A stretch of DNA of 64,000 nucleotides from Adineta vaga. Its lineage: Eukaryota > Animalia > Rotifera. Shown here piece by piece: positions 11,727 to 23,300 of this stretch. The notes beneath the pieces are model-generated. The model had not been told where the DNA came from and ran no database searches. It saw nothing but the letters and a program-made list of their open reading frames with translations. The translations under genes were made by a program, and so were the position numbers. The stretch is taken from contig CP075493.1 of NCBI GenBank assembly GCA_021613535.1, positions 6,014,001-6,078,000 of the forward strand, given 5' to 3'. How positions within the stretch are numbered: position 1 is the stretch's first letter; each line of letters begins with the position of its first letter.

Positions 11727-13129
11727 ATGTGGAATGAACATTTTTGGTTACCAAGAAATACAACTTGGAAAGATTTTCTTGAACTTGAACAACAAGGTAT
11801 TTCTGTACCACGTTTTCAAGATCTTCTATATGTGTATCCATTGGCCGGTGTACTTTATATTCTAAGAATTTTATTTGAACGTTATATTGCTCAACCAATT
11901 GGTCGATTATTAGGCATACGAGAACTCTCGAAACGTTTGCAACGTGACACACCTCCTTTAGCAAAATTTAGTGAATCATTTTGGCGTTTTGCTTTTTATC
12001 TGGGTATATTTATCTATGGACTTATAATTCTAAAAGATGTAAAAACAAAACAGAAAATGATCGTGTTTTTCTAAAATAAAATTTATTTTAGAAATCTTGG
12101 ATCGCAGACACGCGTCATTGTTGGTTAAATTATCCAAATCATCGTTTAACCAATGATGTTTTTTGGTATTATATGATTGAACTTGCTTTCTACTGGTCAT
12201 TAGTCTTTTCACAATTTATCGATGTTAAACGAAAAGATTTCTGGCAAATGTTTCTCCATCATATTGCTACGATATCATTACTTTCGTTTTCTTATATTGT
12301 CAATTTTGTACGCATTGGAGCACTAGTACTAGTCGTACATGACTGTGCAGATTATTGGTTGGAAGTAAATACTTTAATTCATTGTTAACAACTAATTGAA
12401 TGCATTTCTTTTTAAGTGTGCAAAAATGGCAAAATATGCTAAAGTACAAAAGATATGTGATACATCATTCGTGATATTTGCACTTGTCTGGTTTGTAACA
12501 CGTCTTTGTTATTATCCATACAAGTACGTACAGAAAAGATAAATAATTAACTGAATTTTCGATAAGAGATTCGTATTTTTACGAGATCAAAAACCATGTA
12601 GAATAAATTAACGTCTTAAAAGATAACGGAAAACTAATAGGTATCTATTTATAGTATCTAACACGTTTCAAGTTGATTTCGCCGAAAGATTTTTTCGAAT
12701 AGATCAAAAAATCGATTCTTTTTCTTTTCAAGAGCACGTTACAACATTCACGGTCATTAGAAGACGTGATTGATTTTCCATGGGTTATTTACATACTACG
12801 TCAGATTAAGAAATCAAATATAAAATTTCTTTCTATTTAGAGTGTTATATACCACAACATTTGAAGAGTTAAATATTCTTGGTTTATTTCCTGCTTATTA
12901 TGTATTCAATGGTCTTTTAATTCTTCTTCAAATTCTTCATTATTTCTGGTTTTATCTTATTTGTCAAGTGGCGATATCAGCGTTCAAAGCCGGCAAAGTA
13001 ACATACATTCTTTGATTGAAACATTTTCTTGCAACTTTGTTTTATTTTTTCTAGGTAAAAAAAGATGAACGAAGTGACAGTGAAGATAGTGATTATGAAC
13101 ACACGAATGATTCTCGAAAAGACAAATGA
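11727..13129 (+). CDS. CERS: Ceramide synthase (TLC/Lag1 domain)
   Basis: MWNEHFWLPRNTTWKDF start, KFSESFWRF, Lag1 motif RKDFWQMFLHHIATISLL...VLVVHDCADYWLE, and acidic C-terminal KDERSDSED tail. Confidence 0.93.
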
Positions 13130-14513
13130 TCTAGTTTCCTTCTCTCGATAAACAATGTTTCTATATAGATTTTTCGTTTTTTTTTCTTTCATTATGAACA
13201 AACTTTCAAAAACAAATCACATACACTTTTTTTTCTTTCAATTCCCTTTGGGGACAACCGCTTCTTGTTTTTTAAAAAACAACAGTTATTTGATTTCTTG
13301 GAATGATGTGCCTTGTTTAGGAATATCCGATGTGAAAGATAGAAAGAAGCCGGTGTCTTTATTCAATGTGTATGTATGATGACTTCTGTTGTTGTTGTTG
13401 GTGGTGGTGTTGCTCTTCTTCTTCTTATTTGGATTGATTTGTTACCAGAAAAAAGAACGTTTTCTTCTGTTTTTTGTTTCTTTTTTTCTTTTTGAAAACT
13501 TTATATACATATACGTTTTTTGTTCAGAGAATGCTAAAGAGAAGAAAAACAAAGAGCACGCATGTGCGCATATAGCAAATTTGTTTTTGTTCAATTGTTG
13601 AATAATCAAAGAAAAAATGTTCTGATTAAATTCTTTTAAGAAATGAAGGAAGAATGACGTTTGAAAAATCTTCATTTAATGAATTTTCTTATACAAACTG
13701 AAATCTATAGTACATTTATTCATTGTATTTCACTATTAATAATGTGTTATGAATATAATATAAGGAGAAGATTCTATTATTGTACAAGTTTTGTAACTAT
13801 CGTATTCTATTGAAGTTTTCTTAATGTGTAGGAACGTCAAACAAAATTCAGTAGACTAGTAATCATTTATTATTAATAAAGAACAGTTTTTACTTGATCG
13901 ATTTTTCACAATTGTCTAGATTATACGTCGCAATCATTTTTATATAAAAAAACTATTTCTATGATCTTATCTACGAAAAAAGAAGTACTTGATTCTATTC
14001 TAATAACATGATTAAATAATAGAATTGGAATATTTATTAATAAATACAAATTGAGAATAATTGTGGGCAGTGCTAAGATCTTCTATAAAAGAATTTTTAT
14101 TCATAATAGAAATTAATATCCTATGAAAAGTATTCGCCTCCTTCTAACATATATAAAACCAATTATCATTCTCTTCTTTCTTATTAAACATTCATTAGGA
14201 ATATTGCCATTGATATTTTATAATTCATATACAATTCTTACATGCATGAAGTGTCCTATATAAAGATAGGTGACTTTCTTAGATGACGAAAGAAGGTGAG
14301 TGTAAATCACTAAGGATCAACACGCGTGTAATGATGGAAAAATCATCTATTTAACTGTATATACCATGCTCACTTTAGATACATAAATACAAGTGAATAA
14401 TCAGACAACAGAGTATACTTTTTTTCTCACTTCAGTAAGTTTTTGGTTTCGTTGAATCTTATCTCATATCAAGAATCTTCTCTTTTATTTTAATCAGTTC
14501 CATACTATAACAT

Positions 14514-15556: not shown

Positions 15557-18500
15557 ATGGCAAAGTTGGAACGGAACAGGTTTGTAGATTTTCATAATTG
15601 ATCTTCTCGAAGAATAAGAAATACTTCCCATCTAATTTGTACTTTACATAAAAATGTTGTCAGTCAAGATGTTCTTTAATATGCATTGGTGTATAAACAA
15701 AATTTTTGTCATCCGGAATACAGATGTTTAATTCTTTCTATTTGATAATTATGAATATTTATATAATCGAGGGAGCAAAAAAAAGAAATGTCATTTTTGG
15801 ATTTTCTGATGGCAAAAGAATTGTCCTATAGTAGTAATAATCGAAGAAAGTAAGTAGAAAAACAGAATAATAAATTTCATTTCGATGACAATAGAAAATA
15901 AGTTCGATTGTTTCATTATTGAATAGAATTATTTTGATTGCTCTTGGTATTCTTGCTGGAGCACTTCTCATCTCAACGATTGTTTTAGGTGCTCTATATG
16001 GAGCACAGAAAAATAAAACATCAACTACAACTGGTAAGAAACATATTCTTTATTTATGTATATTGTCTAATTATTTAATGTTTGTTTTTTATATAGGAAC
16101 AAATGATGATTTATGTTTAACACCGTATTGTGTTAAAGCAGGTTAGATCAATTTGAGTAAATCAATTGAACGTTTTGTTTTGTTACTATTTTATAGCAAA
16201 TTATATTTTGGAAAGTATTGATGAAACAGTAGAACCATGTGAAAATTTCTTTGAATTTACTTGTGGAACTTGGTTAAAAAATCATCGTATACCTGATGAT
16301 GGTAAGTGAAATTGAAACGATTGATGAAGGAATCTATATGAACATTTGATTTATTTTAGCGGGTTCACAAGATACATTTAATGTTCTACGAAGTCAATTG
16401 GATAACGATATTGTTGGTAAATAAAAATTCTCAATTATTTGTTATTTTTAGTCAGTTTTTTGATAGATTTATATGTATTAACAGTGAATAGTAATCATAG
16501 AGATGATTAAATGTACTTTCTTCGATTTGATGTGACATAGGAAATGAACAGAAAAGTATAATTTAAGATAACTGATTCATTGAGACGCGATGTGATAGAT
16601 GTTTTCTTCTATTTGTTTACATGTTGCAACTTTTCAACGTCTAATCGGATCCTTCGATCTCAAATATTTTATTTATAATTAGATATTTTAACATTACCAC
16701 TTCCAGATGGCATGACTAATATTAAATCAATTAATAATGCTCGTGTTCTCTTTGATTCATGTGTTAATGAATCAGCTATCGAAACCGATAGTGTCAATAG
16801 TATACTCTCTTTAATCAATACTGAGTTTGGTGGTTGGCCAATGCTTCAAGGTTCATCATGGAATTCGTCAACATTTAATCTTTCACGTTTATTACTTAAA
16901 CTACGTGAATATAATCATCATATAATTTATAGTTGTGGAACATCTATTGATGATACAAATTCTTCTATCTATTATATTCGTGTAAGTATTCTTCCAAGTT
17001 AATTAGTGATTTATTTTCGAATTATTTCCAACATTTAGGTTTCACAAAGTGATCTTGGTCTTGAACAACGATCGAATTATTTCAATGACACACGTTTAAC
17101 AACTGCTTATCGACAATTTATGCGTGATTTAGCATTGTTATTAACAAATGATACGACAATGATCAATCAAGATGTTGATGATATATATAATTTTGAGAAA
17201 AAAATTTCATCTGTAAAATATGATTTTTCTCTCTTTGAAATGTAATTAAAATTATTCGAATATTTAGTCTCATCTTACACCTGCTGAACAACGTGACAAA
17301 CAAAATGAAACTGTTCGAACAACAATTGGTAATCTTTCGACAATATTTGATACGAATGTAAAAAGATTTTTCTCTTCTTTTCTTTTCATAACTATGTTTG
17401 ATCTTTATTTAGTTTGGATTTACGAATTACATAAGACAAATTTATTCTTCAAACAATATAACATTGAATGATAATGATACTGTTTCAATTAGTGATATAG
17501 ATTTTCTACGAAATGCATCAACAACTCTGACAGAATCAAATTCACGTACAATACAAAATTATTTTATATGGCGTTTTATGATGAATCGAGTATCAGATTT
17601 GCCAAAACGTTTTCGTTCAATTAGAGAACCATTTGATCGAGAATTTCGTGGTATTAGTTCACAAAAACCACGTACAATCACATGTGGAAGTTTTGTTAAT
17701 AATAATATGGGATTTGCTGTATCAAAAATTTACGTTGTACGATATTTTGATGAAAATGCAAGAAATCAGGTATTAAAATTTCATATTAAACATTAATAAA
17801 TATACACCAATCATATTTCAAAATTTATTTAGTCATTAGAAATGATTCGTAATATTCGAAATGCATTCATTGAAATGATTGATGGTTCATCATGGATGGA
17901 TGCAAGTTCGAAAACTAAAGCCAAAGAAAAGGTATATTGAAAATCACTATTTTCAACTAGAGTTTTTTCAGAGAATTCTTTTTGAAAGGCAGTGGCAATT
18001 GATGAAAAAATTGGTTATCCTGAATATGTCGGTAGTAGTAATACATCCGAATTGGAAAAGATGTATTCTGAAGTAAGAAAGTGTTGAAGATATTTCCATA
18101 CATCGATGAATATATTGTTTCATATGTTTTTTAGTATGTTTTCGGTACAATATATTCGGCTAACGTTATAAAATTATTACAAATCAAATCTCGAGAAAGT
18201 CTTCAAAGACTTCGTGAAGTTGTAGATCGAAAGGCATGGGGTACAAGTCCACCGACAGTTGTCAATGCTTTTTATACGCCATCAAGAAATCAAATTAGTA
18301 AAGAAACTATTATTTCATTTCATATTCATTCGATATATATATACTTTCGTTGTCAGGTTTTCCAGCTGGTATTCTTCAAACACCATTTTTTAATAAAGAT
18401 GCACCGAAGTGAGTTTTATTCTATTATTTATAACCTGTGCAAACCATTGAACTCTTATTTAGATATCTGAATTATGGTGGTAAGTTGCAATTGATAGTCG

Positions 18501-19833
18501 AGTTTCTAGAAAGAATCAAGAAAGTTATTAGGAATTGGCGCAGTTATCGGTCATGAAATTACACATGGCTTTGATGATAATGGTCGTCAATATGATAAGG
18601 ATGGTAATCGCGTACTTTGGTGGACTCAGGAAACTATCAATAAGTTTATTGAGCGTAAAACATGTATCGTCGATCAATATAGTAACTATATTGTTGCTCA
18701 AATCAATCGAACAGTAACTACGATATTTTAATTGTGATCCATGATTTTATATGATGTCATTTCAGGTAAATGGTAATCAAACTCAAGGTGAAAATATTGC
18801 GGATAATGGTGGAATAAAAGAAGCATTTTATGTAAGTTCTGAATGTAAAATCTATTTCGAAAGAAACAAAAGATATCGTTTTTTTTAAATTTAATCTAAA
18901 CACATAATCTCTGTTTCATATCTAGGCGTATAAAAAATTATCATTGACAGAAGATAATCTAACTTTACCTGGATTAAAAAATTATACGAGAGAACAACTT
19001 TTTTTCATTTGGTTTGCACGAATTCGTTGTTATTCAGAATATCATGATTATGTAGCCTATATAAAACGATTGGTTAAGAAACAATCGACTGGGCATGCCA
19101 TTGATGAATTTCGGTAGTAAAAGATTTTCTTTTGACAACGTCCTTGTGTTTGATGTGTCTGCTTTTGTTTTTGTAATCTGTTGTATGTTCATTGCATGTG
19201 CATGTATGTTTGTTTTTGTAGTCTTATCAAAAATGGATGAAAGCAAATGGAAATATTGATAGAAAATTACCTGGTTTGAATAAGTATTCACCTGAACAGT
19301 TATTTTTTATTAATTATGGTCAAATTTGGTGTTCGAAAATGACAGATGCAAATGCGTTAAGTCGAGTTTTATCGGGTGTTCACTCACCTGGAAGATTCAG
19401 GTATTGTGAAAATCGATCTCTAAGCATACTGGAACGAGAAAGGACGTCAAATAAGATTTCTTTCCGACAGTTCTCTAGTCTTTTGTTAGAATGATAAATA
19501 CCGATTACTATGGTTAAATAGTTATTGAGTCATATAATTCTATTAGTTACATTGAAATAGATTTAAATTTCGAATAGCAAGGACTCAAACGTTCTGTTTC
19601 ACTTGTAGCGACAAAGTATGATTGTAATCACTGTTATCTATTGTATTTATAATCATTACTCCCTTCCTGCTTGACGCATGTTTTTTGTTCTCTTTTATTT
19701 TATGTGCAAAACTAACATTCCGTTTTTTTCTAGAGTTATTGGTCCAACATCAAATTTTGATGAATTTGATCGCGTATTTGGTTGTAAACTTGGCCAGAAC
19801 AATAGCCGGTTAACAAAATGCACTGTGTGGTAA
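15557..19833 (+). CDS. Neprilysin/ECE-family (M13) type II membrane zinc metallopeptidase, many exons
   Basis: Putative first exon MAKLERN(R) at 15557 splices in phase to the TM exon. Motifs [41 protein letters not shown] (HExxH), GENIADNGG, and final exon ...KCTVW*. Confidence 0.95.
18926..19113 (+). CDS. Neprilysin alternative exon A (divergent duplicate of exon 19222-19400, predicted mutually exclusive)
   Basis: AG acceptor at 18924-18925, 188 nt open (62 codons + 2), GT donor at 19114. Translates [35 protein letters not shown]...TGHAIDEF(R), with the same phase 0/2 as the canonical exon. Confidence 0.8.
19222..19400 (+). CDS. Neprilysin alternative exon B (canonical M13 sequence)
   Basis: 179 nt (59 codons + 2): [37 protein letters not shown]...VHSPGRF(R). 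Phase 0/2. Confidence 0.9.
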
Positions 19834-20351: not shown

Positions 20352-23300
20352 CTAAAGAAATTTCGCCGACATTTCTGCCGACACATTATTCCTAATTGAA
20401 GTTAGTTATTGATAACAAGTATAACAATCAGAGATAGTAACTTACTGACTAAAATGTTGTTCAGCTTTTGGATCGAAAACATTCAATGAGACCGTTGAGC
20501 CGGGACCGATTTTATCTGAAGGAGAAAACACACTAGTTTATTAGAAAAAAAAGAGAATTATTCGATATTCTATACCAGTCGCGAATATTTTTGGTATATC
20601 AGGTATCATATCAATAGAAGATGGAGGCATACCAGGATGAAGAGTACGTATAACAGGTCCATATGTAACATCCCATGTGTCCAAATTACCGATCTTTTGT
20701 GGAATGTATAATGGAAATCGACAATGACCAAGAGCACCTGAACTTTAAAAATAATCAATGAAAATAATCTATTCAAAATCATACCACTCAATCGTTGTCG
20801 AACAATGACAAGTGCTTGAATACGTGTAGGCATAAACGATTGACGAGTTTCTTTCATTGATAGAATTAATTTATCATTAGGAATATCAACAGTTAGTCGT
20901 TGCCAATTTTGTACAGCTGCTTCTTTCTCACCTAAAAGTTCACATAAAGATCATTATTTTCAAAATAATTCAATGAAATTTCTTTACGAAGAATGGGAAC
21001 TGATTCAGTTCCGATATCACATAGTTTTTCACCCGCTCCATAAACTTGAATATCTACTGTTAATGATTTTGTATCAAAATCATTTCGGGATCCTCCACTC
21101 TAAACAAACTTCATGCATTCAAACTATCTTTTACATAATAAATCGCTGCTTACAACTGAAGAATTGACTGGAACAGCTAATGTTAATGATATATCTTTGA
21201 TACCAATTGTTTCTAAATAAGCTTTTTTACGATTGATTATTTGTTGATAATTACTGTTCTGCGGTAAACTTTGTTTTGCCGGATACGAACGTTGATTCAT
21301 TCCAGGAATATATTTTGGATCTTCATTTTTCAAAGCCAAATGAACAAAAGCTGCTTGAACATCCAATGTATGTAATAGACATGGTTCCTCAAGGAAAACT
21401 TTTCGCATTTCATCATAATCAGTTGCATACATAAAACGATCACGAAGTAAATAGAGAACAGCTTTAGTCGCATGTTCGATATATTGCGTATTCCATTTAA
21501 TCATAAAGAATTGATCCCATAGATAGAGAGCAGCATTCGAATTAAGAATACCGAAAAACATCTATGACAAAAAATAGATCAGTAATTCGTACACTTTCAA
21601 TCATATGTCCCTATATCTGTCTTACTTCTCCAATCCATTTTCGAAGAAAAATCACTGGATCAGCCATTAAATCTCTTGAATATTGCGATGCACTACCACT
21701 ATGTTTACTTTCTAATGAAATAATTTCTGCAACGAAATCCTATTTTAATAGACGAAAAGAATTCATTTTCAATCAAGTAAAAGGAAAATGAGTATTCGTT
21801 TACTTTCGGATTAATTTTTGTTCGAATTTTTGATATTGTTTTCAAATGATCATAAAATTCTGGATCATTCGTCGATAAATCTGTCATAATTTTACTTGCA
21901 ATTGAGAAAACATTTGTCCATTCTGGAAAACAATGACGAACAAATAAATCCAAATGCATAGCAATAACATAGATTTCTTCATCTAAATCGATACAATACA
22001 TGAATGAAAAAAAACCAAATAGACAATTTTGAAGATACAAAATAGACTACCTTTATTCGCTTCATCACGATATGATAATTGAAATGGTAATAACCAATAG
22101 ATAAAATAAGGTTCATAATCTTTTCTATATGTATAAAGAACATTGAGAATTTTAATTGTAAATCGAAGATGATGTTCTTCAAGAAATGGTTGTAATGCAT
22201 GGACTTTACTGTAGGTCTACAAATAGAATAAGTATTACTTAACTATTGATACTAAATAGTCTTGTTAGTAATCATTTAAAATAATCTCAAAGTTTTCTTT
22301 GTATGAAATATAAATTGGATATAACGAAAGTATCTTACTTCTATAACTGCATTTTCAATTAAATTTGTTACTGGTGTACTAGATGGATTAGTTAATTTCA
22401 GATCAGTTTTACCACGTGTAATACCAGCTGCAAATTCACGTCGAATTTGAAGTTCAACCAGACTCTAATCAATAGATAAAGAATAAAACTCTCATTCTCT
22501 CACGATCAAATCATCTTACTAGATCATAATCATGTGGTTTCTTTTCTACACGAAGTAAACATTCAGTCCAAATAAATTGACGAAGTGAAAGTGGAATTTG
22601 TTGACCAAATAATTTTTCTGTTATAAAAATAACACGACGTGGATCACGTTTGAGAAGAGCAACAACGGAACTGGAAACAATATCACTGTAATCGGACGTC
22701 ATCGGATAAGGTGCCGATGATAATTCTATAATGAAACTATTAAAATATTGTATTCCTATTGATTTCATACAGACCAGTAATCATTGGTAATTTTTTTGAA
22801 TTAGTTTTTGAATCTCTCAGAATTGATCGTAATTTTGAACCACTATTCAATTCATCTAAATGTTTTCTTTTATTTGCTTCTTGTAATTTTTGTTCTTCCT
22901 GTTTTGTACTCTCTTTCTGTTGAACTTGATATAAATAACGTTCCAATGATTTACGAACGATTTGATAGGTATGTTCAAGAAAATTTTTCATATCATTCGA
23001 TAGTTTATTAATACTAGAAAAACACAATTATCAATCGATGACAATGTAAGTTAGAATGTAATTCTTACTCTTCGTCTTCCGTCACCGCTAAAGAAATAAA
23101 AAAAAGATTATATAAGAGTTCAGAATTAAATCTTTGTTTCTATACCTGCGCCTATTTCAAGTGCAGATTTATGTGTTTGAATTTGTAACCATGATTTTGC
23201 TTCGTTTTCAAGTTTACGTCGATATTCTTCAGACATTGCTGGTGGACGCTAAATCATATTGAAATAGAATATTTAATCGGTATTCAAAATTGTCTACTCA

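Follow-up and report, generated by a model that had tools for sequence, protein, structure and literature searches.

Gene and locus organization

The window, a 64,000-nucleotide stretch of the Adineta vaga genome, carries on its plus strand the neprilysin (M13) gene I4U23_001917, whose database protein UJR14935.1 (P0232) displays 100% identity to the window exons. Both Peptidase_M13_N and Peptidase_M13 score above the Pfam cut-off, for P0232 as well as for the Rotaria socialis protein P0181. The HExxH motif, the GENIAD glutamate and the VNAFY motif are all present (window positions 18552, 18787 and 18261), and the membrane anchor is based on an N-terminal helix (residues 6-35) in predicted models of R. 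socialis proteins. The features of the locus are as follows.

15788..19833, plus strand: gene for a neprilysin-family (M13) type II membrane peptidase, by identity to UJR14935.1 and by Pfam M13_N and M13
18261..18275, plus strand: VNAFY motif, common to both isoforms
18552..18566, plus strand: HEITH zinc motif, common to both isoforms
18766..18831, plus strand: constitutive upstream exon with GENIADNGG, the third zinc ligand; ends in phase 0
18832..18925, plus strand: intron 1, 94 nt, A-rich, partially conserved among orthologues
18926..19113, plus strand: alternative exon A, 188 nt, phase 0/2, donor CG/GTAGTA
Within exon A: W688 at 19010, R691 at 19019, R693 at 19025, C694 at 19028, H711 at 19094, D714 at 19103
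19114..19221, plus strand: intron 2 (A-B), 108 nt, U/UG-rich and A-poor; the final 96 nt before the acceptor are free of AG
19193..19204, plus strand: tandem Fox-type element TGCATGTGCATG, 18-29 nt 5' of the exon B acceptor, kept in orthologues
19222..19400, plus strand: alternative exon B, 179 nt, phase 0/2, canonical pocket (W693 at 19327, H711 at 19381, G714)
19401..19733, plus strand: intron 3, 333 nt, with one GCATG at 19676
19734..19833, plus strand: constitutive last exon, starting in phase 2; completes R717 and ends with Cys-x-x-Trp and a stop

The public model UJR14935.1 takes exon B only, and exon A is therefore absent from it. This model also reads into intron 3 (19401-19491), probably an annotation error, and omits the conserved last exon (19734-19833). 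A search of the A. vaga genome (100.8 Mb, 6 contigs) found 14 other neprilysin loci, all with a single exon at the swapped segment. With respect to neighbors, the upstream region at window positions 12000-13130 resembles a TLC-domain ceramide synthase, and TLC proteins and the Rotaria orthologues have adjacent accessions, consistent with conserved synteny. Exons of a convergent downstream gene are found on the minus strand at 20540-20935.

A pair of homologous exons

The tandem exons A and B share phases. Both have lengths of 2 mod 3, are free of stop codons, and are preceded by AG and followed by GT. Exon A alone or exon B alone keeps the reading frame; inclusion of both leads to a stop six codons into exon B (codon 69), and omission of both also breaks the frame. 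The initial annotation had described two homologous open exons of phase 0/2, either of which restores the frame and which together cause a frameshift, and these features are confirmed. The amino acid identity between the two exons is 40%, and both match positions of about 116-173 in the PF01431 profile. A property not mentioned in the initial annotation is that the exon A donor, CG/GTAG, yields a stop codon directly after the Arg when it is read unspliced.

Twelve orthologous loci have an intact exon A, namely those of A. vaga, A. ricciae, R. socialis, R. magnacalcarata, R. sp. Silwood-2, Didymodactylos carnosus and six distinct metagenome loci. A metagenome scan with exon A revealed six loci with 66-76% identity and the order upstream exon-A-B; the further loci (A. 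ricciae, three Rotaria, one more metagenome contig and D. carnosus) were reached via database proteins. The order of exons, the 0/2 phase and the AG and CG/GT ends are kept throughout. Exon A is 188, 185 or 182 nt long among the orthologues, such that insertions and deletions are multiples of 3 and all lengths are 2 mod 3. D. carnosus is the sister to the other sequenced bdelloids (PMC7943196).

Pocket residues and predicted fold

In human neprilysin (NEP), W693 lines the S1' pocket and moves into a space left free by G714, and these two residues are neighbors that shape S1' and S2' (PMC4908401). The mutation G714K alters the cleavage preference of NEP (PMC4121237), and the S1' pocket of M13 peptidases has been described as conservatively hydrophobic (PMC2259306). 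Exon B, numbered on PDB 1dmt, has N688, Y689, Q691, I692, W693, C694, H711, P713, G714 and R717; it is canonical, as the initial annotation held, with Y689, I692, W693, C694, H711, G714 and R717 in place. Exon A was said to keep the Cys, His and Arg and to replace the conserved Trp by Arg, and in the same numbering F689, I692, R693, C694, H711, D714 and R717 are found. All intact copies of exon A have W688, R or K at 691, R693, I713 and D714, with five extra residues between the Cys and the His. C694, H711 and R717 are invariant in the 12 intact copies, the spacing from His to Arg is unchanged, and the equivalents of H711 and R717 are in register in a phmmer alignment to 1dmt. Position 689 varies (F, Y, N, M). 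The Cys-to-His spacing is 22 in exon A versus 16-18 in 219 other M13 segments; among the latter, W693 is found in 198, W688 in none and D714 in 4. Exon A thus departs from the hydrophobic S1' pocket with W693, R693 being present in every copy. The longer helix attributed to exon A is also borne out, with a predicted 14 residues versus 10 in exon B.

Structure models of both isoforms, a check that had been proposed, are available as AlphaFold models of the natural R. socialis proteins P0181 and P0289. The A isoform is predicted to fold as a neprilysin; pLDDT values of the A/B pair are 93.0 and 93.1, with 83-98 in the A segment, and the A model (AF2) superimposes on human NEP with an rmsd of 1.8 A over 674 residues. 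The alignment behind the A model is dominated by B-type rows, and thus the model shows compatibility only. A search of the ESM Atlas returned generic M13 clusters only.

The A isoform would be a full-length, folded and probably active peptidase, since its zinc ligands come from exons common to both isoforms and it retains H711, R717 and C694. The prime-side pocket of this isoform appears rebuilt by W693R, Q691R/K, N688W, G714D and a helix longer by one turn; such a pocket would be expected to cut a different set of peptides. An active enzyme with changed specificity is the reading that we favor, with appreciable room for doubt.

Alternatively, the A isoform may be spliced exclusively and folded, yet have little or no endopeptidase activity, an R693-D714 pair closing S1' to leave a decoy that binds peptides or an enzyme of very narrow range. 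Neither R693 nor D714 varies in exon A, and their NEP equivalents are adjacent (PMC4908401); since the two are fixed jointly, an ion pair between them could narrow or close the pocket, an alternative that is just as testable. The rarity of the exon A residues among the 219 segments, the change of P713 to Ile, the position of the five-residue insertion just before the catalytic His and the presence of non-peptidase members in invertebrate M13 families (PMC2259306) are all in keeping with such an inactive form. It is nevertheless rather unlikely, given that the catalytic-site residues H711, R717 and C694 never vary, that constraint on exon A is strongest around the His (dN/dS 0.12), that the zinc ligands sit in shared exons and that PHEX is active with R693. 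It is improbable that A and B are two active forms of largely equal specificity, with exon A acting instead on stability, on the pH optimum, on sensitivity to inhibitors or, via an exposed basic helix, on a surface contact. Many of the fixed changes of exon A do fall in the extended helix, a basic and partially exposed element, and the variation at residue 689 is compatible with this proposal, but the invariant changes include 693 and 714, which are documented S1'/S2' determinants (PMC4908401; PMC4121237).

Isoforms in annotated genomes

The BRAKER gene predictor adds alternative transcripts where RNA hints support them. Both R. socialis and R. sordida have annotations made by BRAKER with their own RNA-seq data (PMC7943196). 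The R. socialis annotation has three A/B protein pairs that are on the same contigs, have neighboring accessions and are identical before and after the swapped segment. For R. sordida, A-only and B-only gene models are both annotated. As the models are predictions, they are suggestive of exon A use and do not constitute proof. Some models stop at the in-frame TAG after exon A or join part of exon A to exon B. Four R. sordida gene predictions (P0317, P0321, P0322 and P0324) use an internal phase-0 donor in exon A with an in-frame join to exon B. Exon A alone had no match among short proteins, and a search with the full-length region returned P0181 only, with no transcript-derived exon A protein. 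Mollusc isoforms that were fetched differ only outside the C-terminal 150 residues.

The models that end at the exon A stop (P0206, P0277, P0280, P0300 and P0320) raise the question of whether exon A is an alternative terminal exon with an unused donor, its Arg-stop giving a truncated or degraded protein. The CG/GTAG sequence produces this Arg-stop in 11 of the 12 intact loci, but D. carnosus has CG/GTATTA and no stop at this place. All loci (12/12) keep the G after CG, as a GT donor calls for, whereas read as coding sequence this base would be an unconstrained third codon position in AT-rich DNA. A truncated protein would also lack two conserved C-terminal cysteines and the terminal Trp, and full models from exon A to the last exon exist in two RNA-annotated species. 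A terminal exon is accordingly very unlikely, and splicing of exon A to the last exon is the preferred reading.

Conservation, selection and loss of exon A

Comparison of exon A in related species together with dN/dS was another of the proposed checks. The pooled dN/dS of exon A, found intact in 12 loci, is 0.31 for the whole exon, 0.25 for the pocket part and 0.12 for the last 12 codons; that of exon B is 0.20, and shared exons have values of 0.06-0.12. Exons A and B also have a low level of synonymous change, and their dN/dS values are inflated for this reason. Between A. vaga and A. ricciae, exon A has 18/38.5 synonymous versus 16/147.5 non-synonymous changes (Fisher p=2e-6). Among four independent pairs, two have a dN significantly lower than dS (p=2e-6 and 0.003); the other two do not reach significance, in part because of the low synonymous change in A and B. 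Neutral change would leave exon A stop-free in just 1-4% of lineages, and it is observed open in 12 loci. These substitution patterns indicate that exon A is under purifying selection and is not decaying.

In a tree of the region upstream of the swap, constructed without PHEX, the A-bearing genes form one clade with a sister clade beside it, and the Didymodactylos gene is outside both. A sister-clade gene of R. sordida has a decayed relic of exon A; therefore, the exon duplication predates the split of the clades and exon A was lost from both sister-clade genes examined. The A. vaga chromosome-4 sister gene (G000:C4:7002580-7005756; L011) is without exon A. The intron end of the chromosome-4 gene resembles a degraded A-B intron, with TTCATG instead of TGCATG. 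In a copy from R. sp. Silwood-1 (L031:934-1122), exon A has a 1-nt frameshift and a His-to-Tyr change and the Fox element is lost; by its sequence, this copy represents a single-copy loss of exon A in progress. In an A. steineri copy (L036:5020-5087), just the last exon A codons and the donor are left, fused to intron 1, and the Fox element has become TGCATA. Exon A is thus dispensable in any one copy, as it is broken or lost in several duplicates.

The initial annotation had named absence or disruption of exon A in related species as a sign of a decaying duplicate; most relatives have the exon intact, and its loss is limited to some duplicate copies. The view of exon A as a duplicate in decay or out of use, or as nothing more than a poison exon, is largely refuted: the broken and lost copies of R. 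sp. Silwood-1, A. steineri, R. sordida and A. vaga chromosome 4 fit such decay, but an open frame, amino acid constraint and splice signals are kept across the deepest bdelloid split sampled, with the low neutral survival per lineage given above. The exon pair is real and old, and exon A is very probably spliced into a full-length protein in A. vaga.

A Fox-type element in the A-B intron

The 12-mer TGCATGTGCATG has just 34 copies in the 100.8 Mb genome; the 33 other sites are candidate RBFOX targets, and 30 of the 34 copies were retrieved with their surroundings as L040-L069. TGCATG occurs in the A-B intron in every intact locus (12/12), most often as two copies in tandem, versus 0/4 loci with a broken or lost exon A (nominal p=5e-4, the loci being phylogenetically non-independent). 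It is absent before the single exon of 13 paralogues. Several orthologues also contain TGCATG in intron 3. A. vaga has two RBFOX-like loci, on chromosomes 1 and 4 (L038 and L039), and the one that was checked matches the FOX-1/ASD-1 RNA-binding domain. The genome therefore has both a conserved intronic UGCAUG near the putatively regulated splice site and an RBFOX gene. The 12/12 versus 0/4 distribution suggests an RBFOX switch with exon B as the default, and exon B is likely the default exon. On these grounds, control of the A/B choice by RBFOX appears likely.

Two regulated exon pairs of Caenorhabditis elegans have similar properties. RBFOX proteins repress an egl-15 acceptor, and in neurons they act together with the CELF protein UNC-75 to select exon 7a of unc-32, the weak upstream exon (PMC3585155). 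As in unc-32 7a/7b and egl-15 5A/5B, the rotifer gene has a weak upstream exon, a probable default downstream exon, a UG-rich intron between them and UGCAUG elements (PMC3585155). The best-conserved UGCAUG pair is in the A-B intron by the exon B acceptor, which resembles the repressed egl-15 acceptor, whereas in unc-32 the element follows the second exon.

Two other mechanisms of exclusion were considered. Intron-intron RNA pairing of the docking/selector type is not supported, as duplex z-scores range from -1.3 to +2.3 in the 12 loci and none is strongly negative. The length of the AG-free zone before the exon B acceptor was used as a test of steric exclusion via a distant branch point; among 10 intact loci, 8 have a zone of 82-108 nt, a length mostly explained by composition (p 0.02-0.22).

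Proposed model

Mutually exclusive use of exons A and B is strongly supported, though indirectly, by conservation, purifying selection, phase, splice sites, the Fox motif and the RNA-guided two-isoform annotations. The initial annotation had proposed a splice switch that gives two specificities. The exclusive splicing it called for is upheld by this indirect evidence, and the difference in specificity is plausible and gains from the presence of R693.

In the proposed model, an ancient tandem duplication of the exon for NEP residues of about 660-717 would have taken place before Didymodactylos split from Adineta and Rotaria. Use of exon B by default would give an ordinary neprilysin with a hydrophobic S1' pocket. 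In RBFOX-containing cells, which are probably neurons or muscle, this protein would bind UGCAUG just 5' of the exon B acceptor, probably assisted by a UG-binding factor of the CELF type. With exon B blocked, the weak donor of exon A would be spliced to the last exon. A frameshift would affect transcripts that include both exons or skip both, and these would presumably be cleared by nonsense-mediated decay, which would act as a backstop. Taken as a whole, the model of two isoforms with altered specificity is somewhat favored by the comparative data.

Relation to PHEX and other known systems

Among M13 peptidases, PHEX is the one with a preference for an acidic P1' residue (PMC2259306). The human, mouse and rat PHEX proteins have Arg at the position of NEP W693 (supplement of PMC2259306), as does exon A, and we infer that this Arg causes the acidic preference. 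PHEX differs from exon A in that it is encoded by a separate vertebrate gene, has the normal Cys-His spacing, has Pro at 714 and differs at positions 688 and 691; exon A adds W688, R/K691, D714 and the five-residue insertion. The resemblance is limited to a single residue and is most likely convergent. As PHEX has Pro and not Asp at 714, D714 could neutralize R693 in exon A. A shift of the A isoform to acidic or polar P1' residues as in PHEX is the leading guess, and a preference for acidic P1' specifically is a tentative suggestion. Equally speculative is a tissue-specific RBFOX switch from a hydrophobic-P1' neuropeptidase to an acidic-P1' PHEX-like enzyme that arose independently in rotifers, by splicing and not by a new gene.

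The rotifer protein shares with human NEP and ECE-1 the type II anchor, M13_N and M13 domains, VNAFY, HExxH, GENIAD, C694, H711 and R717, and its predicted fold matches NEP. Unlike in NEP and ECE-1, there are two mutually exclusive versions of the exon that carries F689-W693, H711 and G714. To our knowledge, the M13 splice variants described thus far change the N-terminal tail or the anchor. The searchable literature has no report of an exon swap in the catalytic segment of an M13 peptidase, in agreement with the initial annotation, which knew of no such case.

Homologous mutually exclusive exons are found in ketohexokinase (A/C), pyruvate kinase (M1/M2) and the reactive loop of insect serpins. 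As in these systems, one gene has two homologous exons that would give a different substrate, regulation or target range; unlike in these systems, the swapped segment belongs to the prime-side pocket of a zinc peptidase, and the transition-state His is part of it. Mutually exclusive homologous exons that alter enzyme sites are thus already known, and the gene itself is a typical member of the M13 family.

M13 peptidases terminate neuropeptide signals (PMC2259306). Judged from sequence comparison, one bdelloid rotifer gene very probably encodes two enzymes, which are likely to differ in the peptides they cleave. If the PHEX-like reading is true, rotifers would have gained PHEX-type specificity via splicing, without a new gene. 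An isoform pair that differs in just about 60 pocket residues is a natural experiment on the determinants of M13 specificity, and could reveal whether Arg at 693 explains the acidic preference of PHEX. The locus also offers a compact, deeply conserved putative RBFOX-type switch in a group where alternative splicing has been little studied, with natural exon-loss copies as controls. Separately, the A. steineri paralogues P0045, P0159, P0180, P0184 and P0256 display an independent change of W693 to Arg in an exon that is otherwise B-type.
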